Positions 66-44,024 of a DNA stretch of 64,000 nucleotides are shown here, piece by piece. Made by a program: the position numbers and the translations under genes. Numbering within the stretch: the stretch's first letter is position 1; every line of letters begins with the position of its first letter. Location: IMG/VR virus record IMGVR_UViG_3300023199_000204, positions 124,001-188,000 of that record. One strand, given 5' to 3'. The notes beneath the pieces are model-generated. The model did no database searches. It had not been told where the DNA came from and saw only the letters and a program-made list of their open reading frames with translations.

Positions 66-1445
66 ATGAATCTTGATACAAAAATTTTAGCATACTGTCT
101 TTATGAAAAAAGACTATTGATAAGCGTAGAACAAGAAATTACAGCAGATTTCTTTCATCCGGATTATCAAGTGTTTTATAAGCTTTTAGTAAGTTGTTAT
201 AAAAACTACCAAGAAATTCCAACACCTAGAGTTATGATGGAGCAGGCGGGAGCAGTGTGGATTCCTGAACATGATAAAATCTATTCAAGCTCCTTGGAAT
301 TAGAAGTTGATCCAAAGGAACTTCCTCACGATTTAAAAGAATTTAAGAGGAGATTTAACAAAAATCTGCTTCTTAAAACTGGATCTAAAGTATTTAAAGA
401 AAACTGGGACGGCAATGAATTTTCCTCTCTTGAAGAGGCAAACAAAATATTAAAAAATCTAATTGTTGAAATAGATAATATTTATAAAAGTAAAATATAT
501 AAAGAAGGAACTTTATCAGAAACAGTAGATGATGCTTGGGATTCTTTTAGAAAAGTTAGAGATGATCCAGATTCAGCTAAAGGCTTACATGTTGGGTTTG
601 AAACGTTTGATAGAATTTCTAATGGGATAAGACCAGCAGAGCTTGTATTGATTGGTGGAGAGTCTGGTTCGGGAAAGTCTGCGTTGTCAATGAATATGGC
701 AGTTAATGCTTGGAAAGGAAATAATATAATTCCTCACGATCCAGAACTTGTGGGAGAGTTTATAGAGGGCGGCGCCAATATTATTTACTTTACAATTGAG
801 ATGCCGTTTAAAGTTTTGAGAAGGCGGCTAGATGCTTGTATTTCTGGAGTCCCTTTATATGGAATAAGAGATGGAAGTCTAGATGAGAATGAAATTCAAA
901 GATTCAAAGCAGGTCTTAAATTTCAGGAAGAGTATGGAAAACAATTTCACATTGTAGATGTTCCTAGGGGCTGTACTGTTCATCAAATAGAGAGCAAATA
1001 TCTAGAAAAATGTCATGAATTTCAGCCTGATCTTATTGTTGTTGATTATATAAGTCTTATGACTTCTGACAAGGATGAAGGGTCGGATTGGCTTAGTCTG
1101 GGAAGATTAGCGGAGCAAATGCACGAGTTTTGTAGAACTTATAATGTTCCAGTAATATCACCAGTTCAGCTTAATAGACCTCCTAGAAACGGTCACACAA
1201 AACCCGACCAGCACAGGGTTGGAAGAAGTAGTATGTTGCCTCAGAATGCCAATATGTTATTGGCAATAGAAACAAGGCCAGAGGAGGAAACAAGAAGAGA
1301 TATGCTTGTAAGATGGGTAAAGAACAGAGATGGAGAACAAACTTCTTTTATATTACACAAACAACTTAATGTAATGAGAATATTTGATAGTGTTCCTGGA
1401 TGGGAACCGAATATACACGATGGGTATGAAGAAATAAATGTATGA
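66..1445 (+). CDS. dnaB: Replicative DNA helicase, DnaB family
   Basis: Walker A GESGSGKS, FTIEM, IVVDYI, QLNR, KNRDG motifs. Confidence 0.93.
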   Translation: MNLDTKILAYCLYEKRLLISVEQEITADFFHPDYQVFYKLLVSCYKNYQEIPTPRVMMEQAGAVWIPEHDKIYSSSLELEVDPKELPHDLKEFKRRFNKNLLLKTGSKVFKENWDGNEFSSLEEANKILKNLIVEIDNIYKSKIYKEGTLSETVDDAWDSFRKVRDDPDSAKGLHVGFETFDRISNGIRPAELVLIGGESGSGKSALSMNMAVNAWKGNNIIPHDPELVGEFIEGGANIIYFTIEMPFKVLRRRLDACISGVPLYGIRDGSLDENEIQRFKAGLKFQEEYGKQFHIVDVPRGCTVHQIESKYLEKCHEFQPDLIVVDYISLMTSDKDEGSDWLSLGRLAEQMHEFCRTYNVPVISPVQLNRPPRNGHTKPDQHRVGRSSMLPQNANMLLAIETRPEEETRRDMLVRWVKNRDGEQTSFILHKQLNVMRIFDSVPGWEPNIHDGYEEINV

Positions 1446-1617
1446 TATAGAAATAGCATATTTAAAGAATGTAATATATGATGATAAAACAGGGCAATTA
1501 TATTTGAAAATGGAAGTAACTGATCCCGTTTGGAAACAAAAAATACTACATAAATGGCAAGAGTTAGATATTAAAATTGTCATTGAGAATAAGGAGAAAA
1601 GTGATGCCGATATATGA
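1438..1617 (+). CDS. Hypothetical protein, 59 aa (below ORF-track cutoff)
   Basis: Read manually: MYDIEIAYLKN...SDADI, overlaps both neighbours. Confidence 0.6.
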   Translation: MYDIEIAYLKNVIYDDKTGQLYLKMEVTDPVWKQKILHKWQELDIKIVIENKEKSDADI

Positions 1618-1894
1618 TTATATTTGCCTCAATTGTAAATATGAATTTTCAGTTATAAAAAAAGTTGATAAAGATGGAAATTCTATAAGTAGAACAAGTT
1701 GTAGCAAATGTGATGGGTTTGATTTAAAAAAAAAGCTTACCAGTTGCGGAGTTAGAGTAGATTATAAAGATTCTAAAGAAATGTATGAAAGGGTTATAAA
1801 GCCAGATGCTAAAAAAATAGCAGATAAAATTCGTGCTGGAGACGAGGACGCCGCTGCCGATGTTTTTGGAGAAGATAAAGTATTTGGAAGTTGA
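1604..1894 (+). CDS. FmdB-family zinc ribbon protein
   Basis: MPIYDYICLNC...CSKC. Confidence 0.8.
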   Translation: MPIYDYICLNCKYEFSVIKKVDKDGNSISRTSCSKCDGFDLKKKLTSCGVRVDYKDSKEMYERVIKPDAKKIADKIRAGDEDAAADVFGEDKVFGS

Positions 1895-1924
1895 TTAGTA
1901 AGTAAAAATTAGGAGAAAGAAAGT

Positions 1925-4900
1925 ATGACTAAAATCAAAAATTCTGGGTCAAAAGGGGTGAATGAAGTGAAAGAAAGTGAAGTAGAAAAAAGCATTTTCG
2001 ATTTAATTAATGATTCTATGGGTGAAGAAGATACTGCGCCCTGGGAAGGAACGGTAAAAGATTATTTACAAAAAGTGATAGCCAAGCCGAGTTTAAATGA
2101 TAATGCCCACGCTAGAATTTGGAGAATGATTGAATCTCACGGAGTAGAGTTTGATGAGGAAGATGAAAAGAAAAAATACCCTAGATATAAGTTTTTTGAA
2201 AACGATTTATTTGGTGTAGATCACGTAATAGCAAGGGTGATGGAATACTTTAAAGCAGCCGTTTCTGGTTCGGAAGAAGTTAGTAGAAGAATTTTACTTA
2301 TGTGGGGCCCAACCTCATCAGGCAAATCGCAATTTGCGACTTTATTAAAAAGAGGCTTAGAGGCATTTTCAAAAACAAAAGAGGGAGAGATTTATGCTTT
2401 GTCAGAGTCACCTATGTTTGAAAACCCACTAGCAGCCATTCCACATTCAGCTAGAGCATCTATTAGAGATAAGTATGGATTAGTAATTGAAGGGGAACTT
2501 TCTCCTAAAATGGCATATCTTTTAGAGCACAAATATAAAGGTGATTTTTGGAAATTACCAGTTAAAAGAATTTTCTTATCTGAGCAGAATAGAGTAGGAA
2601 TTGGAACTTTTCAGCCGGGTGATTCGAAGTGCGTGGGGGGAGATACAATAATACTTACAAATTCAGGACTAATGAGAATAGAAGATATGGAGGAGTTGGT
2701 AGAAAATAATAAAGTAAAAGATTTAATGTGTTTAGATGAAAATGGAAAAGAACACGAGATAACTACATTTTTTAAATATAAAAATAAAGAGGTAGTTGAA
2801 ATAAATACAGAACTTAATTTTAATATAACGGCTACTCAAAACCATCCATTAAAGATTGTTAATAAGGATGGAGATTTTGAATGGAAATGTGCAGGTTTAA
2901 TTTCTGCAGGAGATACTTTAGTTTTAGGGAAAGGAGATATTAATTTTGTCGGAAAAGAACTTCCAGAAAATAAACTTGGTTTAAAGTGGAGTAGTGATCT
3001 AGCTTGGTTATTGGGAGTTTTTATTGCAGAAGGCTCTTATAGAAGAAACACTGTTGAAATATCAAATTGTAATAAAGATGTAAAAAATGTTGTTAAAAAC
3101 TTTGCTGAAACTATAAATTCTACATATATTGTTCGTGATGATAGAATTACATTTACAAGTAAAGAGTTTGTTAATTTCTTAAAAGACATGGAATTTAAAA
3201 CTGGGGCTCATAGCAAATTTATACCTCCAGTTGTTTTTACATCTGGCAAATATATAAAAGATTTTATTCAAGGAATGTGGATTGGTGATGGAAATTTAGG
3301 TAGGCATAAATCCAAAAATACTAATGAAGCTTCATATAGCACAGTTTCAAAAGAGTTGGGTGAACAGGTAAGATTGCTATTACTTACTTTAGGAATTCCT
3401 GCTTCTTTACATAAAGAAAAGGATGTTGGAACATCAGGAGCATTTAAAGTACAAGTTACTGGAAAAAATGTAGAGAAATTACAAGATGTTTTAAATTTGC
3501 CTGAATGGAAAATTACTAGAAAACTTACGGAAAATAAATTTTCAAGCCCAAATACCCTTAGGCTCCCTAATATAGATAATTTATTAAATAAGATATATAC
3601 TAAAACTTGGAAAGGAACTAATTGGTATCCATATATGAATAATAAATCTAGATTCAGTCTAGAATCTTTTCAAAAATTTATTAAAACAGCAAAAGAAAAT
3701 AATATTGAGCAGGAATATTTAAATAAATTAGAGAAGCTATCTAATAAAAATATTTTTTATGTAGATGTTAAAGAGGTTAAAAATTCCATATCTGATGTTT
3801 ATGACATTGAAGTTCCAGGAATACATTATTTTATAGCTAATGGATTTATTTCTCATAATAGTCAAAGTCAATCTGAATTAGTTGGATCTGTAAATTTTTC
3901 TAAATTAGAAGAATATGGTGTAGAATCTCATCCCATGGCCTATAATTTTGATGGAGAACTTAATGTTTCCAATAGAGGAATGATGGAGTTTATTGAACTA
4001 CTTAAAGTAGATCCAAAGTTTAGACATATTCTTTTAACCCTAGCTCAAGAAAAGAGAATTAAGGTTGAAAGATTTCCTTTAATTTCAGCTGATTTAGTTC
4101 CTATTTCACACACAAATGAAACAGAATATAATAAATTCATCGGTGATAAAACTGAAGAAGCTTTGCACGACAGGCTTTGGGTTGTTAATTTCCCTTATAA
4201 CTTAAGGTTAGATGATGAGGTTAGAATTTATAAAAAGTTAATTTATGGCAACACTGGTTTGAGTCAAACTCATATTGCGCCACACACGCTTAAGGTTGCG
4301 GCAATGTTTGCTATCCTATCTAGACTAGAAGAGCCTAAAGATAAAAGTGTTACAATTTTACAAAAGATGCATATGTATAATGAAGAGTCTGTGGATGGCT
4401 TTTCTAAGGAAGATGCTGTTGAATTACATAAAGCTTCAGAAAGAGAGGGCCTAGATGGAGTATCTCCTAGATATGTAGTTAATAGATTAGCAGCGTGTTT
4501 CGCAAAATATAATGTTAGTTCTATCACCCCAATTGATGCCCTTAGAAGTGTTAAAGAGGGGTTAGGAACTAATGCTAAATTAGATAAAGAAGAAGTTACA
4601 AGATTAGAAAACTTGATTTCTCTTTGTATTGAAGAATACAATAAGATTGCTATAAATGAAGTTCAAAAAGCATTTTTCTTAAACTTTGAAACAGAAATTA
4701 AAAATCTTCTTGCTAATTATATTGATAATGTTGGAGCTTATCTCGATGATTCAAAAGTAGAAAATGAGTGGGGCGAGTACGAGGAGCCTGATGAGAGATT
4801 AATGAGGAGTGTTGAAGAAAAGATAGGTATTACCATTAGTGGTGCCGATACTTTTAGACAAGAAGTCTATCGTAAAATGCTTGAATCTAAAAAGCAGGAT

Positions 4901-5134
4901 GGAAGTTATGAATATAAATCACACGCCAGGCTTAAAGAGGCTCTACAGAAACAATTATTTGAAGAAAGAGCTGATGTAATTAGATTAACAGTTTCTACTA
5001 GAAATCCTGATGAAGGTGCTCTTAAGAGATTAAATCAGGTATGTGAAACCCTAATTGATAAGTATGATTATACTGCTGATAGTGCTAATGAGTTGCTACG
5101 ATATGTAAGCAATATAATGAGCAAAAGCAACTAA
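1925..5134 (+). CDS. prkA: PrkA/YeaG-family AAA+ ATPase ('serine kinase'), intein-containing; about 659 aa after splicing
   Basis: GPTSSGKS, SPMFENPL, GIGTFQPGD, GELNVSNRGMMEFIELLK, GLDGVSPRY. Confidence 0.93.
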   Translation: MTKIKNSGSKGVNEVKESEVEKSIFDLINDSMGEEDTAPWEGTVKDYLQKVIAKPSLNDNAHARIWRMIESHGVEFDEEDEKKKYPRYKFFENDLFGVDHVIARVMEYFKAAVSGSEEVSRRILLMWGPTSSGKSQFATLLKRGLEAFSKTKEGEIYALSESPMFENPLAAIPHSARASIRDKYGLVIEGELSPKMAYLLEHKYKGDFWKLPVKRIFLSEQNRVGIGTFQPGDSKCVGGDTIILTNSGLMRIEDMEELVENNKVKDLMCLDENGKEHEITTFFKYKNKEVVEINTELNFNITATQNHPLKIVNKDGDFEWKCAGLISAGDTLVLGKGDINFVGKELPENKLGLKWSSDLAWLLGVFIAEGSYRRNTVEISNCNKDVKNVVKNFAETINSTYIVRDDRITFTSKEFVNFLKDMEFKTGAHSKFIPPVVFTSGKYIKDFIQGMWIGDGNLGRHKSKNTNEASYSTVSKELGEQVRLLLLTLGIPASLHKEKDVGTSGAFKVQVTGKNVEKLQDVLNLPEWKITRKLTENKFSSPNTLRLPNIDNLLNKIYTKTWKGTNWYPYMNNKSRFSLESFQKFIKTAKENNIEQEYLNKLEKLSNKNIFYVDVKEVKNSISDVYDIEVPGIHYFIANGFISHNSQSQSELVGSVNFSKLEEYGVESHPMAYNFDGELNVSNRGMMEFIELLKVDPKFRHILLTLAQEKRIKVERFPLISADLVPISHTNETEYNKFIGDKTEEALHDRLWVVNFPYNLRLDDEVRIYKKLIYGNTGLSQTHIAPHTLKVAAMFAILSRLEEPKDKSVTILQKMHMYNEESVDGFSKEDAVELHKASEREGLDGVSPRYVVNRLAACFAKYNVSSITPIDALRSVKEGLGTNAKLDKEEVTRLENLISLCIEEYNKIAINEVQKAFFLNFETEIKNLLANYIDNVGAYLDDSKVENEWGEYEEPDERLMRSVEEKIGITISGADTFRQEVYRKMLESKKQDGSYEYKSHARLKEALQKQLFEERADVIRLTVSTRNPDEGALKRLNQVCETLIDKYDYTADSANELLRYVSNIMSKSN
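2630..3859 (+). mobile_element. Intein (410 aa) with LAGLIDADG endonuclease in PrkA
   Basis: K/CVGGDT start, TATQNHP block B, LLGVFIAEG and GMWIGDG motifs, ISHN/S end; splicing restores FQPGDSK-SQSQSELVG. Confidence 0.93.
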
Positions 5135-5143
5135 GAGGTTTTA

Positions 5144-6340
5144 ATGAGTAAAGAATCATTTAAAGATATTTGGTCTTTGAGAAAACCTGGGGCTCGCGAC
5201 TCCGCTCGTCATAAGGAGCGGGTTCGCGAAGCCATCAAGGATAATCTTAGAGATTTGATAGCAGAAGAAAATATTATTACTTCACACGGAAACAAAAAAA
5301 TTAAGGTGCCAATTAAGTATCTTGATATGTGGAGATTTAAGTTTGGAAAAAACAAAAAGTCCAATAGTGTCGGACAAGGTGAAGGAAAAGAACCAGGGGA
5401 TATTATTGCCAAGGAAGGTGGAAAACCTGGGCAAGGAGATAAGGCTGGAGAGCAAGCTGGTGAAGATATTTATGAAGAAGAAGTAGATCTAGATGAAGTA
5501 ATTGAAATAATGTTAGAAGACCTAGATTTACCCTGGCTTGAAGAAAAAGATAAAGCAATAGAAGTAGAAACCGAAGAGATTGTGTTTCAAGATATTGCTG
5601 AAAAAGGCTTGCCTGCGAACATTGATAAGAGAAGAACTATTCTTCAAAATATGAAACGAAACGCTATGAAAGGTAAAATGCGTATTAAGGGAATAGCTCT
5701 CGAAGATTTGAGATATAAGGTTTGGGAAAAAGTCGTTGAAAAGCATTCAAACGCAGCGGTCTTTTTATTAATGGACCGATCTGGAAGTATGGATTCAGAG
5801 AAAAAGTATATTGTTAAATCATTCTTTTTCTGGATGGTTAATTTTATTAGAAGAAAATATAACAATGTAGAAATTGTTTTTATTGCTCACGATACAAGAG
5901 CCAAAGAAGTTGAAGAGGATAAGTTTTTTGAAATTTCTCAGTCTGGAGGAACCAAATGTAGTTCCGCACTACAATTAGCAAAGGATATAATAGAAGAGCG
6001 TTATCCAGATAATATCTGGAATAATTATGTATATTCTTTTTCTGATGGAGATAATTGGAGTGACGATAATTCTATTTGTGTAGATTTAGTTAAAGATCTT
6101 TTGAAAGTGTGCCAGGCGGTTGGTTATGGAGAAGTTCATTACAATAATTGGTTTTACAACTGGTCACAAAATAATCAAGATAGAATAGAGGATTATAAAA
6201 AATCTAAGTTAGCATACTCATATGATTCTAATCTGGATTTAGTTACTAATCCAAGATTTATGATTGGTGTAATCTCAAAAAGAGAGGATATTTACCAATG
6301 CCTTAGAAACTTTTTGAAAGGAGTTAATTCAAATGAATAA
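5144..6340 (+). CDS. yeaH: YeaH/YhbH (DUF444) vWA-domain protein
   Basis: VFLLMDRSGSM MIDAS, FIAHDT, SGGT, SDGDNW; middle gene of the prkA-yeaH-spoVR triad. Confidence 0.9.
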   Translation: MSKESFKDIWSLRKPGARDSARHKERVREAIKDNLRDLIAEENIITSHGNKKIKVPIKYLDMWRFKFGKNKKSNSVGQGEGKEPGDIIAKEGGKPGQGDKAGEQAGEDIYEEEVDLDEVIEIMLEDLDLPWLEEKDKAIEVETEEIVFQDIAEKGLPANIDKRRTILQNMKRNAMKGKMRIKGIALEDLRYKVWEKVVEKHSNAAVFLLMDRSGSMDSEKKYIVKSFFFWMVNFIRRKYNNVEIVFIAHDTRAKEVEEDKFFEISQSGGTKCSSALQLAKDIIEERYPDNIWNNYVYSFSDGDNWSDDNSICVDLVKDLLKVCQAVGYGEVHYNNWFYNWSQNNQDRIEDYKKSKLAYSYDSNLDLVTNPRFMIGVISKREDIYQCLRNFLKGVNSNE

Positions 6341-34239: not shown

Positions 34240-34750
34240 CAGCCTCTCAAAACTTTCCTCTCCAGTATATAATCCCCCTCCGTAACGTCTCGAATTTATT
34301 AAGCTTTTTAAACCAATATATTCCCCTCCTAACTTCCCAATATTATTCAATAAATTAACCCACCAAATTAATACAAATAGCTAAATTCCAGCCTCTCAAA
34401 AAAATCAACCAAGCCGGGCTATAAGAATGTGATAAATATCTGTTTTTATTGTTGCTGATCATATAAGTAAATCTAATATAAACCATAAGCATAAAAGCAT
34501 TTCTCTCCTCCCTATCTCTCTTATATCTAATAACTCATAACCTCATTGCCACATATACATTAAGCTATATCTTACCCCTATTCTCTTCCTTTCCCCTAAC
34601 CTATACATATATATACATTATTAATCTTAAGAGCCACTTCTTACTTCTATCTTACTCCTTTCTCTATATATTAAACTTAATCTTAAGCTGTATGTTAAAC
34701 TTAATAGCTACATCTTACCCCTCCTATCCCTTTACATATATATACATAAA
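34240..34750. other. G-depleted non-coding junction, candidate genome end or origin
   Basis: 8 G in 240 nt at 34501-34740; TACATATATATACAT direct repeat at 34604 and 34733. Confidence 0.5.
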
Positions 34751-35210
34751 TTTACCGAACGGGGTGCCCCGGAGCCTCAACTTCAAAAGTTTCCCGCCTG
34801 GGTCCGTACTACATCACCCTACGTGTAAGATAATATCCTACATATAAATAACTCCCTGAAATTATTGATGAAAATATTTTTCCGTTTGAAAAACAATGGA
34901 TCGACGATTATATTAGGTTGAAAGCGGCAAGCTGTGTCGGCATGGCGCAGCAAGGGTGAGCAGGCACAGGGGGCGAGTGGGTGATACACACCTGAGCCCC
35001 CGCAAGAGACCCGAAGGGTCTCTGCTCCCCAAAAAACACAGTGCTGGGCGTTTGATTTATCCAGCACGACGCTTTTAGAAGGTTGAGAGCGTCGGCGTCT
35101 GCGTGGTGTAGGCGTCGTAATCCTGGCGGGATTTCCCGCCGCATACGGAACGGGGCCGGCTTAGGCATAAAGCCCCAAAAGATAGCGGGTAAAACCGCAA
35201 GGAGACTATC

Positions 35211-35720
35211 ATGAGTAAGTTCAGCATTTTCTTGGGAAGGGGAACGCAGATCAGCATCGCGAATACGAAGCTGCGCGAGAGCGTCGTCAGGGCAGCGGAG
35301 GAGCGCAACGTGGGGGAGGAGAAGCTCAAGGCGCAGCTGGATAAGCTGTGCAGCCCGGAGGATCGCGCGGAGTGCCAGTCCGTGTTGGAGGGAGGTGGGT
35401 CCGTGACCACGAGCCTCTACGATCTCAACGACCTTACCCCGGAAGTGCGCAAGAAGGCCGTGGCCTTCTTGCGCCAGCTGGCCAAGCAGGCGGGCAGCAA
35501 GGTTCGCGAAGTGCGGTTCACCGTGACGGCACCGAAGTCCGGAAAAGTCGTAGGTAAGTCGTCCGGCCTCAAGGGCATTCTCAACGCGCCGGTGACCATC
35601 ATGGGCGCCGAGCTTGAGCGCGCTGGCGCCAGCAAGTCGGACGGGCCGAGCGCCTTTGACTCGGCCATCGCCTCGATCCTCGGGTCCGAGGACACCGACA
35701 GCGAGACCGCCGACGCCTAG
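35211..35720 (+). CDS. GC-rich hypothetical protein, first gene after the junction
   Basis: AAGGAG RBS, strong G/C third positions, hairpin after stop. Confidence 0.85.
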   Translation: MSKFSIFLGRGTQISIANTKLRESVVRAAEERNVGEEKLKAQLDKLCSPEDRAECQSVLEGGGSVTTSLYDLNDLTPEVRKKAVAFLRQLAKQAGSKVREVRFTVTAPKSGKVVGKSSGLKGILNAPVTIMGAELERAGASKSDGPSAFDSAIASILGSEDTDSETADA

Positions 35721-36616
35721 ACTCTTCGGGGGCGCAAGCCCCCGACATTCCTACCTTTTTAAAGGGGCGGTCCCATTAACTTGGGGTCGCCCCTTTTCCC
35801 ATTCGAGCGCTAAATGCGTTTCTGCGTGTTCGAGCAAGGGATCGCCCACTGCTACGTCCCTAGACTTGTCTATGTGGGGGCGTATCAAATCTCGACATGT
35901 GCGGACGCATCCGCACCGTTCGACGATTACTGGCTGGTTCGCTAAGTCGACTCAGTCACACCTTTTGCCCGCTTTCCTTAATGGTTTGCGGGCTTTAGGT
36001 GTTCGAAGGGTTTTCTCCCTTCGAACGCAGATCTTAAACTTGCTTTGATGTTTCTTGGGAATAATCTCCCAGAAAGCATCATAACCAGCGTTGCGGTCGT
36101 CACGGCAGCAAAAGCAGGCAAGGGACAGTATGATGCCGCGATTCATCTCGTGGCTAAGTCTCTGGTTTTCCCCGACCACAACTCTTGGGGGAATGAGTGG
36201 AGTACTGCCTTCACTCACGCAACATTGGAGCTAGACTCCAATGATCACGGCAGGTTCTACCGCTAGCTAAGGTTCTTTTTGTTTCTTGGGCACCATAGGT
36301 GCCCTTTAAGCATTCGAGGAGACTTTCTCCAAAAAACAAAAGGGTTTATATCTCTACTTGACTTTAAAACGAGGGTAGGGTTCGTGAACCTAGGAAACTG
36401 TAAGCCTAATTACAGTGGGCGGGGGGCCTCACATTTCATAGTTATTTTTTTGAAAAGGTTCGTGTTAATTCTGGGAGCTATGGCTCCCTATAAGCATTCG
36501 AAAACCCACAAACAAGGAAGCTCCCAGTAGATGAGTTGAAGCGACTACTTAACTCTTAATGTTAATGTTTAGAGGGCACCATAGGTGCCCTTTAGGTATT
36601 CGAGAAAGGTAAAGCA

Positions 36617-36763
36617 ATGACCACTTTTATCACGGGCTTTCTGGTTGTGGGGATTGTATTCATTCAGAACCCAGCGAAATACTTTGATGTATGCGCTGGA
36701 TTCTTTGTGGGTTTGGTTTTCACTTTGATTATGGTTTTGGTTTTTGGAAACCAAAACCGATAA
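36617..36763 (+). CDS. Small membrane protein, 48 aa
   Basis: Read manually; two hydrophobic stretches; lies between two hairpin elements. Confidence 0.6.
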   Translation: MTTFITGFLVVGIVFIQNPAKYFDVCAGFFVGLVFTLIMVLVFGNQNR

Positions 36764-36860
36764 TTTTTTTCTGAAATTTTTTTTTGGAAAAGGGCGTATT
36801 AATCCTTCCAAGGGTTCACGCCCTATAGGTGTTCGAAAACACACAAACAAAGGAGCTATT

Positions 36861-37160
36861 ATGCTCACTCGGAAAGAGAAAGAAGAACTGTTGCGAAGGA
36901 TCCTAACCTTTCGCAAGGGCAAAGTGAACCTTCGGACGCAACGACCGAAAGGTCAGGATCAAGAATCACTGCGTGCGTACTTCGTGTGGCGCATGGCGAG
37001 ATTCCATGGTGGAGAAGATCTGAGCATGCCGATTCAGGCACTTCAGGTCATTGGAGATGACGAAGCGCTCCCCGACTTGAAGGAGATGGCCGACAAGCTG
37101 GCGAAGCGTTTCTTTGGGAGTGACATGCGAGCCGTCAATCGGTTCGAGGGTCTCTTCTAG
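36861..37160 (+). CDS. Hypothetical protein, paralog of 49629-49949
   Basis: AAGGAG RBS; shares MLT...RKG...YFVWR. Confidence 0.8.
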   Translation: MLTRKEKEELLRRILTFRKGKVNLRTQRPKGQDQESLRAYFVWRMARFHGGEDLSMPIQALQVIGDDEALPDLKEMADKLAKRFFGSDMRAVNRFEGLF

Positions 37161-37212
37161 GGGAGACATATACATCGGCAAAACACTTTAAGGGCACTTC
37201 GGTGCCCTTTAG

Positions 37213-37786
37213 GTGTTCGACAATACACAAGCAAAGGTGGCTATAGTGGTTGTCATCCGTCACGAAATTATCAACACCTTAAAGGGAGACTTTGAGGTTT
37301 TCTCGGGAAAGAATCCCGAGCAAGTGGCCTGGATTCTCTCTTACGTTAAGAGAGAGTTTAAGGGGCGACTGTTTCCAGCAACTCCTGGAAATCCTGACGG
37401 CATCGTCAGGAATGACCAGGGCGAGGAAATCGGCCTCTATACCTATGAGGCTCCTCCGTTTCGGCCTCGCAACTCCACGTGGCTATATGTGGAAATTCGG
37501 CTGTGAGCCATAGAGCCTTTACAGGTTTATATACTTTTGCCCACTTTCCTTAATGGTTTGTGAGCTTTAGGTGTTCGAAACCTCATAGTCAAGGAGAGTT
37601 GAAATGACTCAGAACCTGTATCAAATGACTCGTCGCCTCCATCGCAAAAGCCCGCAGCAGCTAAGGGCGTTGCTAAACAAGCTGGCGGTCATCGGTGCGA
37701 CCACGAAGACCAACGTCTCCGGCTACATGAGGGACGTGAGCCACATGATGGCTTGGAAACAAGTGGAGGGGCCGCACAAGCGATAG
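37213..37786 (+). other. Two small hypothetical ORFs (37213-37506, 37604-37786)
   Basis: One ORF per inter-hairpin interval; start of the first is uncertain. Confidence 0.6.
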
Positions 37787-38148
37787 GTCTGCGGGACTTA
37801 AACAAAACACTCACAGGCGCGCGGGATTATTTCCTTAGCGCCTTTGGGTGTTCGAAGAGCAGAGCCGGTTGGTCCCTGGTTCGAATCCTACTTCTCGGCT
37901 TCGAGGAAAAAAAGTTTGAGAAGTATGACTTCGGAATATAAACTTCTTTGATAAAAGGGTCTTCGGACCCTTTAGGTATTCGAAGGGCGTAAAGCTTAAT
38001 TGTTTAACTTGACAACTTAGCTTAACTACTTAACAATTTAATATCTTAATCTTACACCCTTCCTCTTAACTTAATGTTTCTTTTGCCAGTTGAAACTGGC
38101 AGCTAACCTCAACCCAGAGCAAGAATGCTCCAAACCAAGGAAAAAACA

Positions 38149-38511
38149 ATGAGCACGACCACGAACAAAATCATCGAGCAGGCGAAGTCGGCAATAGTGA
38201 ATGGTACGAAGATCGGCGCCAGCGTCAATCTCGGTCGTCAAATCACCAAGCTGGTTCGCGATTTCGCGGGAGCACACTACCCCGAGGCTTTCAACAGCCC
38301 GCTGTTCAAACAGGTGGAGCCGCTTCTGGTGGCTTTCATCGTCCAGGCTGCGACCACGGCATATCCGAATGTGCCGGGAGCGCAGAAGGCGAACAAGGTC
38401 GCTGGACTGGCAATGGTCGGTGAGGCTGCCCTTCTGACCCAGGAGCTGATGTCCAAGGTGGATGTGAGCACGCTGTTCCAGCGAGTGGCTGCTCTCGCTC
38501 CAACGGAGTAA
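38149..38511 (+). CDS. GC-rich hypothetical protein
   Basis: AAGGA RBS, high GC3. Confidence 0.8.
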   Translation: MSTTTNKIIEQAKSAIVNGTKIGASVNLGRQITKLVRDFAGAHYPEAFNSPLFKQVEPLLVAFIVQAATTAYPNVPGAQKANKVAGLAMVGEAALLTQELMSKVDVSTLFQRVAALAPTE

Positions 38512-38522
38512 GCAGGTATAAG

Positions 38523-38558
38523 GCTTCAACGGGGCCGCGGCTCGATGGCCGCGGTGAT
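38523..38558 (-). CRISPR. Solitary 36-nt CRISPR-repeat-like unit, type I-G (I-U)-like; no array
   Basis: Minus strand ATCACCGCGGCCATCGAGCCGCGGCCCCGTTGAAGC: 7-bp stem and TTGAAGC 3' end. Confidence 0.55.
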
Positions 38559-38636
38559 GCTTGTACCTTTCGAGAAACCGCCAGTGCGGTAGGCAGGTAT
38601 AAGAAACAAAAAAAACAACAAACAAAAGGAACTGCT

Positions 38637-39227
38637 ATGTTGAAACTAGGTTTTTCGGAGCTTGTGATTCACAAACGCTTTAACAAGGTCCTTCTCAACA
38701 AACTCAAGAAGTCAGAATACGAGTTCGGTCTTACGGGCTCGTACTTCTTCGGGACCTATCGCCCTGATAGTGACCTTGATCTCTTCGCCAAGGACTCGAA
38801 TGAAGTTCGTAGATTCCTCTACGAATGTAATTTTAATATCGAGTGGGAGGTGAATGGGTATGGGGACAAAAATACTGTCTTATTGTTAAGGCATCACTCC
38901 AATCCTCACATCGATGTTCAGTTGGTGCGGGACACCGCTGCCAAAAAGGATGTGGAGGAGAGGATCAAAAAGGAAACGGGTTGTTGGATCCTCACTCCCC
39001 AATGTGGTGAGACCAAGACCTCTATTTGCTTCAAAAAGCGGCGTGCTACTTTGTATGATATGCTGTATGGGCTGTATGTTTCGGGACACCCCGATTCGCC
39101 TCTTGCGCAGCATATCACAAATCGTTCAGACGTGCTGAACAAGAAGTTGGGTTTGGGTTCGGCACCCAGCGTCGCAGGGAGCAAGAAGGAAACACCAGCA
39201 CTCAAGGGATGGCCTTTCACGTCCTAA
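38637..39227 (+). CDS. Nucleotidyltransferase (pol-beta superfamily, MNT-like)
   Basis: LTGSYFFG...DSDLDL and third Asp in HIDVQ. Confidence 0.8.
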   Translation: MLKLGFSELVIHKRFNKVLLNKLKKSEYEFGLTGSYFFGTYRPDSDLDLFAKDSNEVRRFLYECNFNIEWEVNGYGDKNTVLLLRHHSNPHIDVQLVRDTAAKKDVEERIKKETGCWILTPQCGETKTSICFKKRRATLYDMLYGLYVSGHPDSPLAQHITNRSDVLNKKLGLGSAPSVAGSKKETPALKGWPFTS

Positions 39228-39249
39228 AAACAGGAGATAAAACCATTTT

Positions 39250-39322
39250 GGGCCCATAGCTCAGCGGTTAGAGCGTCGCTCTCATAAAGCGGGGGTCCCT
39301 GGTTCGAATCCAGGTGGGCCCA
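39250..39322 (+). tRNA. tRNA with CAT anticodon (elongator Met or Ile2); no encoded CCA
   Basis: Full cloverleaf, GGGCCCA/TGGGCCC, loop CTCATAA, GGTTCGAATCC. Confidence 0.95.
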
Positions 39323-39572
39323 AAGCAACAATTAATAAAAATAACGAAAGGAGCCAAACAATGCGATAATCTAATATTATTGAAGGAAAACATATATAGT
39401 GTCCTGGGGCTGCCCAACTTTAATAGGTTGGGCAGCCCTTTAGGCATTCGTGAACTTGGCGATATAGGTTAACTTGGTACGCGACAAGAGAATTGCGAAT
39501 TGCGAATTGCGAATTGCTAAGGATCATGGGGAAATTTCCTGGGGGTTTTCCCTGGGACGAAAGGACAGAATC

Positions 39573-39878
39573 ATGAAGACCATGAAGACCATCAGCAAAG
39601 ACATGATCAAAGAGTTGCAGGTCGGCGACGCCGTACTGGTCCTGACCAGCACGGCGCATTACTGGACAGGGAGGATCGTCTCTCTGTCCATGACAGAGAT
39701 CGCCCTCGACGAGGCGGCCTGGATCTCGCAGGTGGGCCGCCACAGCGACTGCGTCGCACGAGGAGACCTGAGTGGGGCTGAGATCGAGCCCCACGCTGAC
39801 GGGCAGATTACCAGGCTGCCTCGGATCGGCAGCGTGGTAGTGGACTGGATCCACGCGTTGCCGCGCGAGCAGCGCTAA
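39573..39878 (+). CDS. GC-rich hypothetical protein (Sm/SH3-like beta protein typical upstream of Ser/Gly-repeat phage genes)
   Basis: HYWTGRI...LDEAAWI...EIEP; AAGGA RBS. Confidence 0.75.
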   Translation: MKTMKTISKDMIKELQVGDAVLVLTSTAHYWTGRIVSLSMTEIALDEAAWISQVGRHSDCVARGDLSGAEIEPHADGQITRLPRIGSVVVDWIHALPREQR

Positions 39879-40270
39879 TGGACGATCTCGCAGGGGAGCT
39901 CGAGCAGCTGATGCGCGCTGGAGACGAGCGCGTGCTCACGGACTACATCGCCGAGCACGCGCTCGAGTGGCTGTGGCTGCCGGCGCCGACCCTTCCGCTG
40001 ATAGCGTGGTCTGGGCGGCTGTCGGGGTCGCGGTCGCGGTCGAGGTCGTGGTCGTGGTCGCTGTCGGGGTTGCGGTCGCGGTCGAGGTCGTGGTCGCTGT
40101 CGGGGTTGCGGTCGCGGTCGAGGTCGAGGTCGCGGTCGCGGTCGAGGTCGTGGTCGGGGTCGGGGTTGCGGTCGCGGTCGAGGTCGTGGTCGAGGTCGTG
40201 GTCGGGGCCGAGGCCGAGGTCGAGGTCGCGGTCGCGGTCGAGGTCGTGGTCGGGGTCGGGCTGGCTCTGA
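39878..40270 (+). CDS. Low-complexity (Ser-Arg/Trp/Gly)n protein
   Basis: TAATG coupling to upstream gene; C-terminal 80 aa of SR/SW/SG dipeptides. Confidence 0.75.
   Translation: MDDLAGELEQLMRAGDERVLTDYIAEHALEWLWLPAPTLPLIAWSGRLSGSRSRSRSWSWSLSGLRSRSRSWSLSGLRSRSRSRSRSRSRSWSGSGLRSRSRSWSRSWSGPRPRSRSRSRSRSWSGSGWL
40022..40261 (+). repeat. Tandem hexamer repeat, mostly TCG-NGG, about 40 units
   Basis: tcgcgg/tcgagg/tcgtgg/tcgggg seen directly. Confidence 0.95.
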
Positions 40271-40343
40271 CGTCGCGCGTGCCGGTATAGATACGATAGG
40301 AGGGGTTATGATTACTTTCGTATTTTTCTGACGGAGGTGAATC

Positions 40344-40478
40344 ATGCGCAAGACTCATAAAAAGATTGGTCCTGGCGGAGTGAAGTGTCCTTGCTGTAAT
40401 CCTTATGGTAAGGACATTAAGAAAAAGCTTAATCGTTGGGAGCGACGCAAGGTAAAACAAGAGCTTAAAACTTATTAG
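40344..40478 (+). CDS. Small basic protein, 44 aa, GPGGVKCPCC motif
   Basis: Read manually; GGAGGTG RBS. Confidence 0.75.
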   Translation: MRKTHKKIGPGGVKCPCCNPYGKDIKKKLNRWERRKVKQELKTY

Positions 40479-40503
40479 CTTATGGGGTGCTGTGAGAGTT
40501 TGG

Positions 40504-40706
40504 AAATGCTGGGAGGTAGGCTTAGAAGCAGCCAGCGGTGTTGAGCAAACCGCATACCTTTAAAGAGTAGCTCATACCCACTCTAGGTGAGTTTGACCGT
40601 GAAGGCTCGCGGAAACCTTGCCGGAGTTTAGGAGTCGGTCTAGAACGACTTTTAATGAAAACCAGGGTTGAGAAAATGCTTTTGGCGTAATAGCACACCA
40701 GTATTT
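40504..40706 (+). ncRNA. Candidate ncRNA mimicking the 23S rRNA L11-binding GTPase-associated centre (H43-H44) with two insertions
   Basis: Collinear blocks GCTGGGAGGTAGGCTTAGAAGCAGCCA / CCTTTAAAGAGT / GCGTAATAGCACACCAGT closed by 9-bp helix 40504-40512:40698-40706. Confidence 0.85.
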
Positions 40707-41150
40707 ATTGGAGTAAAAATCCTAAAGGTCGTTGGTCTTTCTCAAGACTACGACCTTTAGGCATTCGAGGACACTTTAGCGCGTATGGTTGGAAGGTTGG
40801 TATATACATTTAAGTGTTTGACTGTGTTGTGGAGCACCCCCCCCAATGAGATAAGGGACTTCAAGTTCTTTTCCTAAGTGTGTGGGACCGAAAGGTCAAA
40901 AACTAACACAGCGAGATCGGCGGAAGTATCACACGACTCCGCGCGGATCTCCATTTGGCGATAAAAAATAACAGAATAAGGATAAGCCCGGATACTTAAT
41001 TGTATTCGGGCTTTAGGTATTCGAGGAGCTTGTCTCCTAGAAATTGTTAGACCTTGTGAAGACCGCGGGGCGCCACTTCCCCCGGCCGGCAGACACGCCG
41101 GTGTTCTTCCGGCGGAAGAAATAGCGGTTAGCCGCTGAAAGGAAAGGTAC

Positions 41151-41891
41151 ATGCGACTCTCAATCAAGATGTCCAACATCGACGCGCTGTGCGAGGAGCT
41201 ATTGAAGCTCCCAGCCGGTGCACTCTTTCGCCACAACGACGCCGGTGACCTGCCCGCCGCAGGTCGCAGGCAGAAGTTTTTCTTCACTAACCGCGGGCAA
41301 GCCAAGACGGGATACTCGTACCGGACGCGCACGAGTCGCGGTAGTTGCCCGCGGTCGTGCCGTCTCTTCGATATCTGCTACGCTAGCGTTAATCCTCTCC
41401 GATGGTACTGGCAGCAACTCGGACGTTGGTACAAGCGCGGCGCGGAGTATCTCGATCACCGTACCGTGATCAAGCTCGCCAAGGCGGCTTCGCACCTGAC
41501 GGGTTGGACCTACACGCATTGGGACTGGAAGCGCTACTTGCGCACGTTCCTGCGCGGCAACGAGCTCGGGTTCACGATCAACGCGTCGACCGAGAGCCCC
41601 GAAGAGGCACTCGAGGCGTTCCGCGCAGGTCTGCCGGTCACACTCGTCGCTCCGCCCTTCGTGCGCAAGAAGATCATGCTCGAGGACGTGCCCGCCATCC
41701 CTTGTCCCGCGCTCCTGCAAAAGGGCTTCACATGCGACATGTGCGGCAAGGGTTCACCTCTGTGCGCCCGAGCCGACAGGCACTACATCATCCTGTTCCC
41801 CGCGCACGGCGCCAGAGCCCGAGCCGTGTGGAATCGCATCGCGAAGTTCTGGACGGACTTTCTGCCCGAAATGGAGGACGCCTGTGCCTAG
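41151..41891 (+). CDS. GC-rich Cys-rich phage protein (DUF7227/Gp88-like)
   Basis: RHNDAGDL, CPRSC...CYA, WTYTH, GFTINAS, CPA...CDMC...C, FPAHG. Confidence 0.65.
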   Translation: MRLSIKMSNIDALCEELLKLPAGALFRHNDAGDLPAAGRRQKFFFTNRGQAKTGYSYRTRTSRGSCPRSCRLFDICYASVNPLRWYWQQLGRWYKRGAEYLDHRTVIKLAKAASHLTGWTYTHWDWKRYLRTFLRGNELGFTINASTESPEEALEAFRAGLPVTLVAPPFVRKKIMLEDVPAIPCPALLQKGFTCDMCGKGSPLCARADRHYIILFPAHGARARAVWNRIAKFWTDFLPEMEDACA

Positions 41892-42193
41892 AAGAGACGA
41901 CGATGTGGGCTGGGCGGCCATCTAGAGTCTCACCTAAGTCGACGGGTGAAAAAAAATACCGTCCATACAAATCCGACTCATATGTTTCGCCCAAGTTCAA
42001 GTCGCACACTCACACTATGGGGGACATACCATAGGGCTACTGGCTTGCTATAAAGGAAACTAAGACGCTCGCGAGCGCATCTTTCCTTTACAGCAGCCAG
42101 TGGCCTTTTGGTGTTTCGACTGCCTTGGGCAAATGCGCGATAACGCGCGCGATATAGGGTTAAAGAAGTTTTAAATCATCATTATTCGAATAT

Positions 42194-42269
42194 GCACCCG
42201 TATCGGACAGGACTTCTAATCCTGAGCACCGTAATTGGATCGATGCAGGTTCGAGCCCTGCCGGGTGTA
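42194..42269 (+). ncRNA. Non-canonical tRNA-like RNA with Arg(TCT) anticodon hairpin and rearranged D-arm
   Basis: Acceptor GCACCCG/CGGGTGT, CAGGA-CTTCTAA-TCCTG only 7 nt after acceptor, T-arm GCAGG-TTCGAGC-CCTGC. Confidence 0.75.
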
Positions 42270-42331
42270 TTAAAGAAGAAGTTAAAGAGAGCCGAGCACA
42301 CAAAGAAGTTCCATTTACAACGAGGTGAATA

Positions 42332-43598
42332 ATGGAAATCTCCGCGCCAGCATTTATGCAAAAAGGATTGGTCTTTTTGATCGATCTAGGAGCCGACTGT
42401 AAAGAAGAGGTAATCTCTCACGAGATGGGGAGGAGCTTTTGGGGACCTGGTTTTTGGTGGAAGGTGGTAAAGGAGCTACGAAGCAGAGGATACGACATTT
42501 CTCCGGAAGACCTTGGGAGAACCATTGCCAAAATGTACTATGACTTTCGTCCCAACGAGATGATGAATGAGCAAATGGTATCCTATGGATACTCCCAGTG
42601 TTCGAAGTGTGAATTGAGGTATCTTAAACACAAGTTCAAAAGTCACGATCCGTGTGATAATTGCAAAGGTGGTGAATAGAGGTTTCGCAATTTCCGGGAC
42701 TTAGAAAAGGAGAGAATCAAAATGAATAATTTCAAGCGTCTCCGTAAAATCTCGAACACTATCGGCATTTCCCAAGTCAACATGGGAAAGACCGCAGAAG
42801 GGAATGGTCACGTCTCGGTTATTCTGAGAAATGGTCTTTCTATCCGTTCGGAATACGGACAGGGAGACTTTCAGAAAATCTGGTCGGCTATTCACGTATG
42901 GAAGAAGGCACAGGGTCTTCCGTTCTGTTACAACGGCAGTTCGCACGGCTTCGTGTCGCGACTTCGTAAAAAACAGCCGAAGCGAGTAAGAGATGTTTAA
43001 GTCAATTCGGGAGTGGGTTCGCAGAAGGAGAATCAATAAGAAAACAGCGCTGACGGCTTCACGGTTCAAGTGGCTTGGCCTTGAACTTATCAAGGTCTTT
43101 CCCAAGAATCACGATGGGACCGTAAGGATTACCGCGAAGGTCGTCGGCAAGCCAGTGGAATACATCGGAAAGGATTTCAACTTTCAAGGTCGCAAGTATA
43201 TCGTAAAGGATATGGAGTATGGAAAACTCTGTGATAGCATCGTTGGTCTTCGGTGTATAGACATGGGAAGAAATAGATAAGCTTGAAGGGCTTATATGAG
43301 CCCTTTCGGCATTCGAGGAGAAAAAAAGATTATGTTTTCAAACGATGACATTTGGGATTTCCTGAACTTGGAGAGGAATTTTCGCTATGTTGGAGGTCTT
43401 CTTCGTTTTCTAGAAGCACTTCCCGACAAGAAGAACTGTGCCAACCCAAGGGAGCCTGATTGTACGTCAGCTCGCTACATTGGGACTATCATTGTTCGTA
43501 ATGCTTATAATGCTTATAACGCGATGCGAGATGAGGAAAATATGACAAGGGACTGGGGCAACATCATAGATATGGTGTTGGCTTTTAACAACGAATAA
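42332..43598 (+). other. Four small hypothetical ORFs (42332-42679, 42722-43000, 42993-43280, 43332-43598)
   Basis: RBS-preceded open frames. Confidence 0.7.
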
Positions 43599-43787
43599 GG
43601 AGACAAACGATGTCTTTCAACAAAATCAAAAAGGAGTAAGAAATGGGATATATCTGTGCTCCAATTGTTGTGGTATATGTTGCGATTTTGTCAGCTTTGT
43701 GTCAGAAAAAAGAAGTGGACTCAATGAATAGATAGATAGATAGGTTTGCTATCCTTGAACAAACTACCTAATTAAAGGTAATAGAAA

Positions 43788-44024
43788 ATGAATTACGAAA
43801 AATATGAAGTAAGAGTATATACTGATGGAGATAAATATTGGTATCAAGAGGGAAAGCTTCATCGGACCGATGGTCCAGCAGTAGAATTTGCCAATGGAAC
43901 TAAACTTTGGTATATAGAAGGGAAAGAATATACTAAAAAAGAGTTCATTGAACTCTTGAAGAATGACTGTGATGGAAAGACCGTCGAAATCGACGGAAAG
44001 AAATACAAACTAATTCTTCAATAA
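43788..44024 (+). CDS. RTDGPA repeat protein, copy 2 (one unit)
   Basis: Shared MNYEKYEVRVY N-terminus and KTVEIDGKKYKLILQ C-terminus. Confidence 0.88.
   Translation: MNYEKYEVRVYTDGDKYWYQEGKLHRTDGPAVEFANGTKLWYIEGKEYTKKEFIELLKNDCDGKTVEIDGKKYKLILQ

Follow-up and report, generated by a model that had tools for sequence, protein, structure and literature searches.

The window analysed here, a stretch of 64,000 nucleotides, is part of the 316-kb IMG/VR contig UViG_3300023199_000204. It encodes a DnaB-type helicase, PhoH, an intein-bearing PrkA-DUF444-SpoVR set and an intein-bearing ribonucleotide reductase, and it carries five or six tRNA genes that are all located on the + strand. The nearest protein matches are found in Thermus phages and in huge uncultured phages. 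Based on the gene set, the protein matches and the tRNA genes, the phage origin of the window is well supported. At 40504-40706, again on the + strand, this large phage carries a non-coding RNA element of about 200 bases that is the subject of this study.

The element resembles the GTPase-associated centre (GAC) of 23S rRNA, which is formed by helices H43 and H44. Over three collinear blocks, 47 of 57 positions are the same as in E. coli 23S 1051-1108, taken from rrlH of strain MG1655 (record positions 1310-1367). The first block (40508-40534) corresponds to 23S 1051-1077 with 23 of 27 identities, the second (40557-40568) to 1079-1090 with 9 of 12 and the third (40685-40702) to 1091-1108 with 15 of 18. 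A previous sequence-only reading of this DNA had arrived at about 47/57 identities with an E. coli sequence that turned out to be letter-perfect against rrlH.

From the 5' end, all on the + strand, the element is built as follows. The 5' strand of a closing helix, P1 (40504-40512, equivalent to 23S 1047-1055), replaces the top of H42 and is complementary to the 3' strand at 40698-40706 (equivalent to 1104-1112); AAAUGCUGG pairs with CCAGUAUUU over 9 bp, including one G-U. Compared to E. coli 23S, pair 1053:1106 is changed from C-G to U-A and pair 1054:1105 from A-U to G-C, and both changes are compensatory. The segment 40513-40534 contains G1056, the 5' strand of H43 (lower stem at 40514-40516), U1060 (40517), A1061 (40518), the 1067 hairpin GGCUUAGAAGCAGCC (40519-40533, with A1067 at 40524), which is identical to that of E. 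coli, and A1077 (40534). Between A1077 and position 1078, a 22-nt hairpin (40535-40556) is pushed out, whose stem is formed by 40535-40539 and 40549-40553 (GCGGU/ACCGC) and whose loop is GUUGAGCAA. The 3' strand of H43 follows at 40557-40559 (1079-1081), and then the junction UUAAAGAGU (1082-1090, ending at 40568) with the pair U1082:A1086 at 40560:40564 and A1088 at 40566. A second insertion, a variable domain of 116 nt between U1090 and G1091 (40569-40684), has a base helix of 40569-40571 with 40678-40680 and ends with a family-specific UUUG linker at 40681-40684. The distal hairpin of H44, GCGUAAUAGC, is located at 40685-40694 with A1095 at 40689, and is followed by A1101 (40695), C1102 and A1103 (40695-40697). 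The complete A1067 and A1095 loops, the 9-bp closing helix with its two compensatory changes and the insertions of 22 and 116 nt with their sub-hairpins had all been described in the sequence-only reading, and all were confirmed. An A at position 1061, as present in the window copy, is the substitution used in structural work to stabilise the tertiary fold (PMC1802607).

The minimum free energy fold of the + strand gives the long-range helix as well as H43 (z = -3.27), whereas the - strand folds no better than shuffled sequences (z = -1.47). With up to two mismatches allowed, the 15-mer of the 1067 hairpin should turn up 0.01 times in the window by chance; it was observed once. A covariance model (R1) built from 34 members of the family described below finds the element at 40503-40707 with 100.3 bits (E = 4.8e-30), which is the score of a trained member since the window element was in the seed; the same search found no second copy in the window. 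An Rfam search revealed no rRNA anywhere in the window, and the LSU model RF02541 gave no match there at the gathering threshold or at E values up to 10, whereas the same tool picked up the true 23S in the Pd_22F record at 2940 bits. The earlier view that the locus lacks flanking rRNA and is not an rRNA gene therefore holds.

The surroundings of the element are as follows. It begins 20-25 nt past the stop of an ORF for a basic protein of 44 aa (40344-40478), which has a weak PHROG match of unknown function. Near other elements of the family no homologue of this ORF was found, and it was rejected as a family-linked partner. The nearest tRNA genes are on the same strand, one upstream at 39249-39323, 1175 nt from the element, and one downstream at 42194-42269, about 1490 nt away and found with Rfam only. 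The window copy lacks the directly adjoining tRNAs that are common, though not universal, in the family. Among the ORFs downstream of the element, DUF7227 was the only clear domain match. A strong hairpin (40721-40761, + strand) lies 15 nt past P1 and outside the family core; the region 40708-40790 folds with -26.6 kcal/mol (z = -3.25). This hairpin is a possible 3' end of the transcript, terminator or stabiliser, but since it has no U-tract it is not a canonical intrinsic terminator. A scan for sigma-70 promoters and intrinsic terminators yielded nothing useful.

The element is not unique to this phage. IMG/VR was scanned with the exact 15-mer of the 1067 hairpin, which gave at least 120 contigs, and with the 3' block UUGGCGUAAYAGCACAC, which differs from rRNA and gave at least 119 contigs. 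In the listed contigs of the first scan no similarity to E. coli 23S was found past positions 1046-1109, approximately, and they are therefore not rRNA genes. About one quarter of the first-scan contigs listed are chance matches within coding sequence; the remainder have the architecture seen in the window. From this set 96 elements (89 unique) were defined, with a length of 105-462 nt and a median of 206 nt, and altogether 154 elements were found in viral contigs, MAG contigs and cultured phages. The 3' block matched 74 times in 185,579 species genomes (596 Gb), which is about the chance expectation for a 17-mer; some 18 of the 74 are real elements, mostly in MAG contigs. Carriers among the cultured phages are Cronobacter GAP32, Pectobacterium CBB, Serratia BF, Aeromonas 4_4572, Xanthomonas XacN1, XaC1 and XbC2, Yersinia fHe-Yen9-03 and fHe-Yen9-04, the Erwinia pEa_SNUABM series and Pseudomonas pf16, Milchi, Astolliot and UNO-G1W1, and in these phages the copies occupy unannotated gaps. 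The hosts of the family span many phyla. BLAST of a 700-nt region against GenBank phages gave no match, which is due to the shortness of the conserved blocks; queries with the short blocks did match. Phage members on which model R1 was not trained score 70-126 bits, compared to 49-56 bits for the true rRNA domain (E. coli, Paenibacillus). The element thus belongs to a large phage-borne RNA family.

All members follow a common plan. In the 5' to 3' direction it comprises P1, H43, the junction UUAAAGAGU, a variable domain at U1090/G1091, UUUG, the H44 hairpin with the consensus GCGUAAYAGC, A1101-C-A and the 3' strand of P1, so that the 3' tail reads UUUG-GCGUAAYAGC-A-CAC with A1101. The window copy has all of these features: P1, the H43 bases, the junction, the helix-closed insert, UUUG and A1101. 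The pairs of P1 (1048-1055 with 1104-1111) are canonical in 92-99% of the members, compared to 41-89% in shuffles, and double-sided changes were seen in all nine P1 pairs. In H43, 1058:1080 occurs as all four Watson-Crick pairs and 1057:1081 alternates between A-U and C-G; the tertiary pair 1082:1086 alternates between U-A, C-G and A-U and is canonical in 96%. According to RNAalifold, 14 of 21 consensus pairs have double-sided changes, including the base helix of the insert, which occurs as GC, AU, UA and CG. In 106 distinct model-aligned sequences, 90.7% of the cells are paired, compared to 67.2% after shuffling and 30-52% with slid partners, and the covariation score is 0.54 versus 0.14; this alignment was fitted to the model and is hence biased to structure, but independent anchor-based counts agree. 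The proposal that the RNA is a selected, structured mimic of H43-H44 is borne out by this family-wide covariation: the search for homologues in phages, as had been suggested, led to members with inserts of variable length and with compensatory changes in all helices, not random decay. The element is widespread and under strong structural selection.

The insert at 1090/1091 is 45-350 nt long in the family, and its sequence is not conserved family-wide beyond the base helix. Sub-families do have insert motifs in common, such as ...CACCCCGNAAC/AUGGUAAGG... and GUGCGAAAUG...GAUGUGC. Comparison of the inserts with other 23S and 5S regions (SRL, H42 and others) gave only scattered chance matches of 10-12 nt, and the idea that the inserts are copies of other rRNA regions was rejected for lack of recurrent similarity. 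An insertion of 19-57 nt at 1077/1078, as in the window copy, is present in 13 of 87 members, several of which share UUGAGMA-type loops, and for these reasons it looks like a selected feature of a sub-family.

Each of the two search patterns fixes one half of the element and, therefore, each half was scored in a sample chosen on the other half. Sample A, 85 unique elements chosen on the 3' block, was used for the 5' half, and sample B, 87 elements chosen on the 5' block, for the 3' half. In sample A, U1060, G1063, U1066, G1071, C1072, A1077, C1079, G1087, A1088 and U1090 are conserved in 100% and G1089 in 99%; G1059 is also found in 100%, but was demanded by the sample filter. Conservation is less strict at the apex of the 1067 loop, with A1067, the base that is contacted by thiostrepton and factors on this side, in 82% (G, C and U occur), G1068 in 76%, A1069 in 91% and A1070 in 82%, and the exact rRNA 15-mer is retained in 40 of the 85. 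In the H44 loop, as seen in sample B, U1094 is conserved in 86 and A1095 in 85 of 87 members, whereas position 1097 is free. A1101 is found in 87 of 87, where rRNA has U. Together with the UUUG linker, the insert and G1089/U1090, A1101 forms a signature of the family. Even enterobacterial jumbo phages retain this signature, whereas E. coli 23S has A1089/A1090; this speaks for inheritance among phages and not for repeated uptake from the hosts.

These data bear on the explanation that the element is an inert fragment of a host 23S gene, picked up by recombination, or the cis-regulatory leader of a ribosomal-protein gene. The high identity of the two loops to rRNA is what one would expect from such a fragment. 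However, compensatory changes occur throughout the family, the signature A1101, UUUG linker and 1090/1091 insert is absent from rRNA, enterobacterial phages do not follow the rRNA of E. coli at 1089/1090, true rRNA scores below untrained phage members on the family model, and the first-scan contigs listed have no flanking rRNA. As for a leader, a Pfam scan of 28 ORFs of the window gave no ribosomal-protein domain, no ribosomal-protein genes were found nearby, and in the family it is tRNAs and not coding starts that adjoin the element; the sequence-only reading, too, had argued against a leader. Covariation, signature, model scores and genomic context thus contradict both versions of this explanation, and we assign it a negligible probability.

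Phage tRNA genes are the usual surroundings of the family; they are not mentioned in the sequence-only reading, nor is the position of the 22-nt hairpin within the L11 footprint. A tRNA is located within 50 nt of the element in 37 of 96 members and within 2 kb in 61, while the other 35 have no tRNA within 2 kb. The nearest tRNA is on the same strand in 92 of 92 cases. Many elements are flanked by tRNAs on both sides at a distance of 0-10 nt, which is the spacing within tRNA arrays; in pf16, the element fills a 253-nt gap between tRNA-Asn and tRNA-Pro. A consistent protein neighbour was not found within 3 kb at 154 loci. The largest neighbour cluster, an HNH endonuclease, accounts for 9 of the 154 loci, and lineage-specific neighbours are TerD, vWA-TerF and a CCA-adding enzyme, the latter located directly downstream in one protein cluster of five loci. 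In XacN1, an RNA ligase neighbours the element. Because of the tRNA flanks and the lack of a conserved protein neighbour, the element is probably a stable RNA in its own right, transcribed together with tRNAs and set free by tRNA processing, rather than a cis-regulatory leader.

What could such an RNA bind? The isolated rRNA domain of about 58 nt binds L11 via the protein's C-terminal domain, and the interface on the rRNA comprises 1058-1060, 1062-1065, 1075-1083 and 1088 (PMC1802607). The invariant set of the phage family coincides with the builders of the tertiary fold and with this interface. The interface nucleotides are conserved and the main insert at 1090/1091 falls outside; the 22-nt hairpin of the window copy at 1077/1078 lies inside the footprint 1075-1083. 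Mutations of A1067 affect binding of thiostrepton but not of L11. The pattern of conservation argues for an RNA whose fold is recognised in the manner of uL11 rather than for ligands that depend on A1067: since A1067 and its loop neighbours vary, whereas the positions for the fold and L11 are invariant, ligands such as thiostrepton, EF-G or an A1067 methylase are disfavoured.

We tentatively propose, with a confidence that falls slightly short of even, that the element is a stand-alone GAC mimic that captures uL11, the most likely ligand of the phage RNA, or else some other GAC ligand that recognises the fold. It would be transcribed from the + strand; in most relatives it takes a slot in a phage tRNA array and would probably be cut out by tRNA-processing nucleases. 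The tertiary surface of the folded RNA would match that of the ribosomal domain, making the RNA a molecular mimic with free or exchangeable uL11 as the direct ligand, bound via its C-terminal domain. As the most likely consequence, there would be less L11 on the ribosomes, and activation of RelA, and with it the stringent response, would be weaker during infection; L11 (rplK/relC) is required for RelA activation. Blunting of the stringent response may matter when the cell receives a flood of phage tRNAs, which are possibly under-charged, and the link to tRNA arrays could be rationalised in this way, since a tRNA-flooding phage would gain from a blunted RelA. Transcription, processing, three-dimensional fold, L11 binding and physiological effect are what we infer from the sequences, and the link of the phage RNA to RelA is pure inference.

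Some observations speak against capture of uL11. Ribosomes contain L11 in stoichiometric amounts and most of it is assembled; therefore, its titration would require an RNA as abundant as tRNAs or the stripping of exchangeable L11. The hairpin at 1077/1078 in the window copy and some relatives could weaken or alter binding. The change of U1101 to A and the insert make the three-way junction a four-way junction. Finally, A1095 is nearly invariant, whereas no need for it in L11 binding is known, which may reflect selection by some agent that recognises the H44 loop.

Alternatively, the mimic could bind translational GTPases (EF-G, EF-Tu, IF2, RF3), the L10-L12 stalk or thiopeptides via the A1067/A1095 cleft. 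Both loops of the window copy are indeed identical to rRNA, the exact 15-mer is kept in nearly half of the members that were not selected on it, and EF-G reportedly binds oligonucleotide mimics of the GAC domain in vitro, as described by Munishkin and Wool in 1997. On the other hand, 18% of the members have G, C or U in place of A1067, and 1068 and 1070 also vary, whereas 1067, 1068 and 1070 are essentially invariant in rRNA. H42 with its kink-turn, which is needed for binding of L10, is replaced by a plain, arbitrary covarying helix, and for this reason binding of the full L10-L12 stalk is disfavoured. Sequestration of elongation factors would hurt the phage itself, and thiopeptides enter poorly into many of the hosts, which are Gram-negative. 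We therefore regard these ligands as highly improbable.

Could the GAC module merely serve as a compact, nuclease-resistant, perhaps L11-chaperoned scaffold, with the activity residing in the lineage-specific inserts or in self-assembly like that of GOLLD and ROOL? The inserts are of considerable size, with a maximum of 350 nt, their base helix covaries, sub-families share insert motifs, and GOLLD and ROOL are likewise found close to tRNAs. However, it is the core and not the insert that is conserved throughout the family, the smallest members have a simple insert of 51-67 nt, and insert-less copies are present on two viral contigs; moreover, Rfam gave no match to GOLLD or ROOL. The shortest members would place the function in the core and, together with the conservation of the core, they make a role as scaffold quite unlikely.

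The main rival to uL11 capture, unlikely as it is but to be given some weight, is that the RNA diverts or inhibits an enzyme directed at the GAC, be it from a defence system or an interbacterial toxin, serving it as a decoy or pseudo-substrate, and thereby spares the ribosomes. Candidate effectors are an ADP-ribosyltransferase, a nuclease or a methylase acting on H43/H44. Phage tRNAs are thought to counter tRNA-directed nucleases, which offers a parallel. One toxin of this kind is known from bacteria, Tre23, which ADP-ribosylates H44 of the GAC at 1095-1098 (PMC8661411). A decoy would be in line with the better conservation of the H44 loop (U1094 and A1095) compared to the apex of the 1067 loop, with the location in tRNA arrays near genes for RNA repair or maturation (the RNA ligase of XacN1, the CCA-adding enzyme) and with the spread over many host phyla, as suits a universal target. 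On the other side, we know of no anti-phage system that targets the GAC, and at the 154 loci no toxin, antitoxin or defence gene is consistently linked to the element. Furthermore, a stoichiometric RNA would face a catalytic enzyme in competition with 10^4-10^5 ribosomes and would be inefficient unless bound much more tightly. The sequence-only reading had listed, as possible functions, sequestering or recruiting L11, the stalk or translational GTPases, blunting of the stringent response and a decoy for ribosome-targeting defences. This list has been narrowed by the family data, but the function of the phage RNA is unproven.

With the 58-nt L11-binding domain of rRNA (GAC, H43-H44, 1051-1108) the phage RNA shares the secondary structure and the determinants of the tertiary fold, U1060-A1088, 1082:1086, G1071/C1072 and G1093-A1098; the loop sequences are the same in the window copy, and at 1084-1090 the family matches the common bacterial consensus AAAGAGU. 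In contrast to the rRNA domain, it is free-standing and located in phage tRNA arrays, has a generic helix in place of H42, a 45-350 nt insert at 1090/1091, A instead of U1101 and a variable apex of the 1067 loop. Extra-ribosomal copies of protein-binding sites of rRNA are also present in the leaders of ribosomal-protein operons, such as the uL1 site of the L11-L1 operon and the L10(L12)4 leader, but no uL11-binding leader is known and the L11 operon is controlled by uL1 (PMC10931766). Moreover, these leaders are cis-acting 5' UTRs of cellular genes, whereas the phage RNA is flanked by tRNAs and has no ribosomal-protein gene, and Rfam leader families did not match the window element or 13 family loci. 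GOLLD and ROOL occupy the same niche in tRNA clusters and are probably co-transcribed with tRNAs as well, but they have no relation to the phage GAC RNA in sequence or structure, as judged from Rfam, and do not resemble a ribosomal centre. Other non-tRNA RNAs embedded in a phage tRNA cluster are the stable RNAs C and D of T4. The pseudo-ToxI of phage PhiTE is likewise a phage RNA that copies a host RNA to capture its protein partner (PMC3475682). Its target is a type III toxin-antitoxin system and not the ribosome, and it has no structural relation to the phage GAC RNA.

The sequence-only reading knew of no description of such an RNA, and this agrees with our searches. In Rfam 15 no family, LSU rRNA included, matched the element, neither in the window (at the gathering threshold and at E values up to 10) nor at 13 family loci (at the gathering threshold). 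For the window and these loci only tRNAs were returned, plus the true 23S in the Pd_22F record, and the models for tmRNA, tRNA, GOLLD and ROOL gave no match over the element. Searches of open-access full text and bioRxiv, which included the loop sequence, revealed no description of the family, and it is not in a survey of 224 motifs. That a virus encodes a copy of a ribosomal functional centre which acts in trans is thus apparently undescribed, with no precedent found.

Taken together, we consider it somewhat more probable than the contrary that phages of many phyla encode, in their tRNA arrays, a trans-acting replica of a ribosomal centre that hijacks a host component which recognises the GAC, either uL11, and thereby RelA, or a GAC-directed toxin. 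If true, the family would provide the first case of a virus that mimics an rRNA domain, and would show phages controlling or protecting the translation machinery at a level that had not been recognised. Viruses would then copy not only tRNAs and ribosomal proteins but also pieces of rRNA. If confirmed, the family would be a new class among the few widespread non-coding RNAs of phages, and no other of these comes with a ligand hypothesis that can be tested at once. Its presence may account for unannotated gaps of about 250-360 nt in several cultured phages, among them the jumbo phages GAP32, CBB, XacN1 and BF and the smaller pf16. In addition, it offers a natural set of variants, tested by evolution, of an RNA tertiary fold that is among the best studied, with minimal, expanded, A1061-stabilised and A1067 forms. 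Depending on the ligand, the family would point to a silencing of the stringent response by phages or to anti-phage systems that attack the GTPase centre.

The element (window 40504-40706, + strand) lies in an island of 9-10 kb (34750-44000) that has a GC content of 43-70%, compared to about 30% in the remaining genome. Apart from the element and two tRNAs, the island has few ORFs that look convincing, and it is directly preceded by a stretch of about 500 nt (34250-34750) that is devoid of genes, G-poor and CT-rich, with a GC skew of -0.56. The island might mark the boundary of a module or of the genome end, have been acquired as a block by horizontal transfer, or represent a cluster of structured RNAs. 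The local GC content reaches up to 70% at a tandem array of 238 bp (40021-40258) located about 245 nt 5' of the element and made up of about 40 hexamers of the type GTCGNG; a period of 36 was scored as well. The array is enclosed by an ORF (39878-40270), and its predicted translation is a series of SR/SW dipeptide repeats.

The element is flanked upstream by a small ORF (40344-40478) that stops 20-25 nt before it. This ORF has a strong Shine-Dalgarno sequence and encodes a very basic polypeptide of 44 amino acids with a CPCC motif; it matched PHROG 25404 (function unknown) weakly and showed no linkage to other members of the family of phage-borne RNAs resembling the GTPase-associated centre. 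Directly 3' of the element is a strong hairpin (40721-40761) with about 18 stem pairs (-26.6 kcal/mol, z = -3.25), which is not followed by a U-tract. Further downstream, a tRNA-like sequence (42194-42269) was matched by Rfam with 39.8 bits and was not called by ARAGORN. Three of the five tRNAs that ARAGORN did call in the window have a CAT anticodon.

Genes for RNA repair or maturation were found beside some relatives of the element. In the sequence L253, a gene of the CCA-adding enzyme/poly(A) polymerase family (1845-3311) follows the element at a distance of about 100 nt, and homologues of this gene are downstream of the element in four related loci. In Xanthomonas phage XacN1 (L123), an RNA ligase gene (3328-3978) is directly upstream.

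Elsewhere in the window, three phage genes (1925-5134, 6333-10208 and 11769-14849), encoding a PrkA kinase, a SpoVR-like protein and a class II ribonucleotide reductase, are split by inteins with LAGLIDADG homing endonucleases; the SpoVR-like gene probably holds two. PrkA, DUF444 and SpoVR form a contiguous operon, an arrangement also known from Thermus phages.

The record of Paenibacillus phage Pd_22F (GenBank MZ092003.1) carries complete 23S and 5S rRNA near one end (1273-4378). This rRNA stems either from host DNA or from an artefact of assembly and is not a family member.

Within the family, a sub-family has an extra hairpin between A1077 and position 1078 (E. coli 23S numbering) of H43. 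It is present in the window (40535-40556) and in the sequences L007, L033, L037, L069, L099, L116 and L118, and the hairpin loops of several members are alike (UUGAGCA or UUGAGAA). The element occurs as two closely spaced copies in each of two viral contigs, L070 at 5123-5363 and 5440-5709 and L269 at 1118-1234 and 2173-2363. Two other viral contigs, L019 (3712-3772) and L087 (4245-4418), have minimal, insert-less copies of the domain that are rRNA-like (U1101) and have no flanking rRNA. These minimal copies may represent either the ancestral state or separate capture events.
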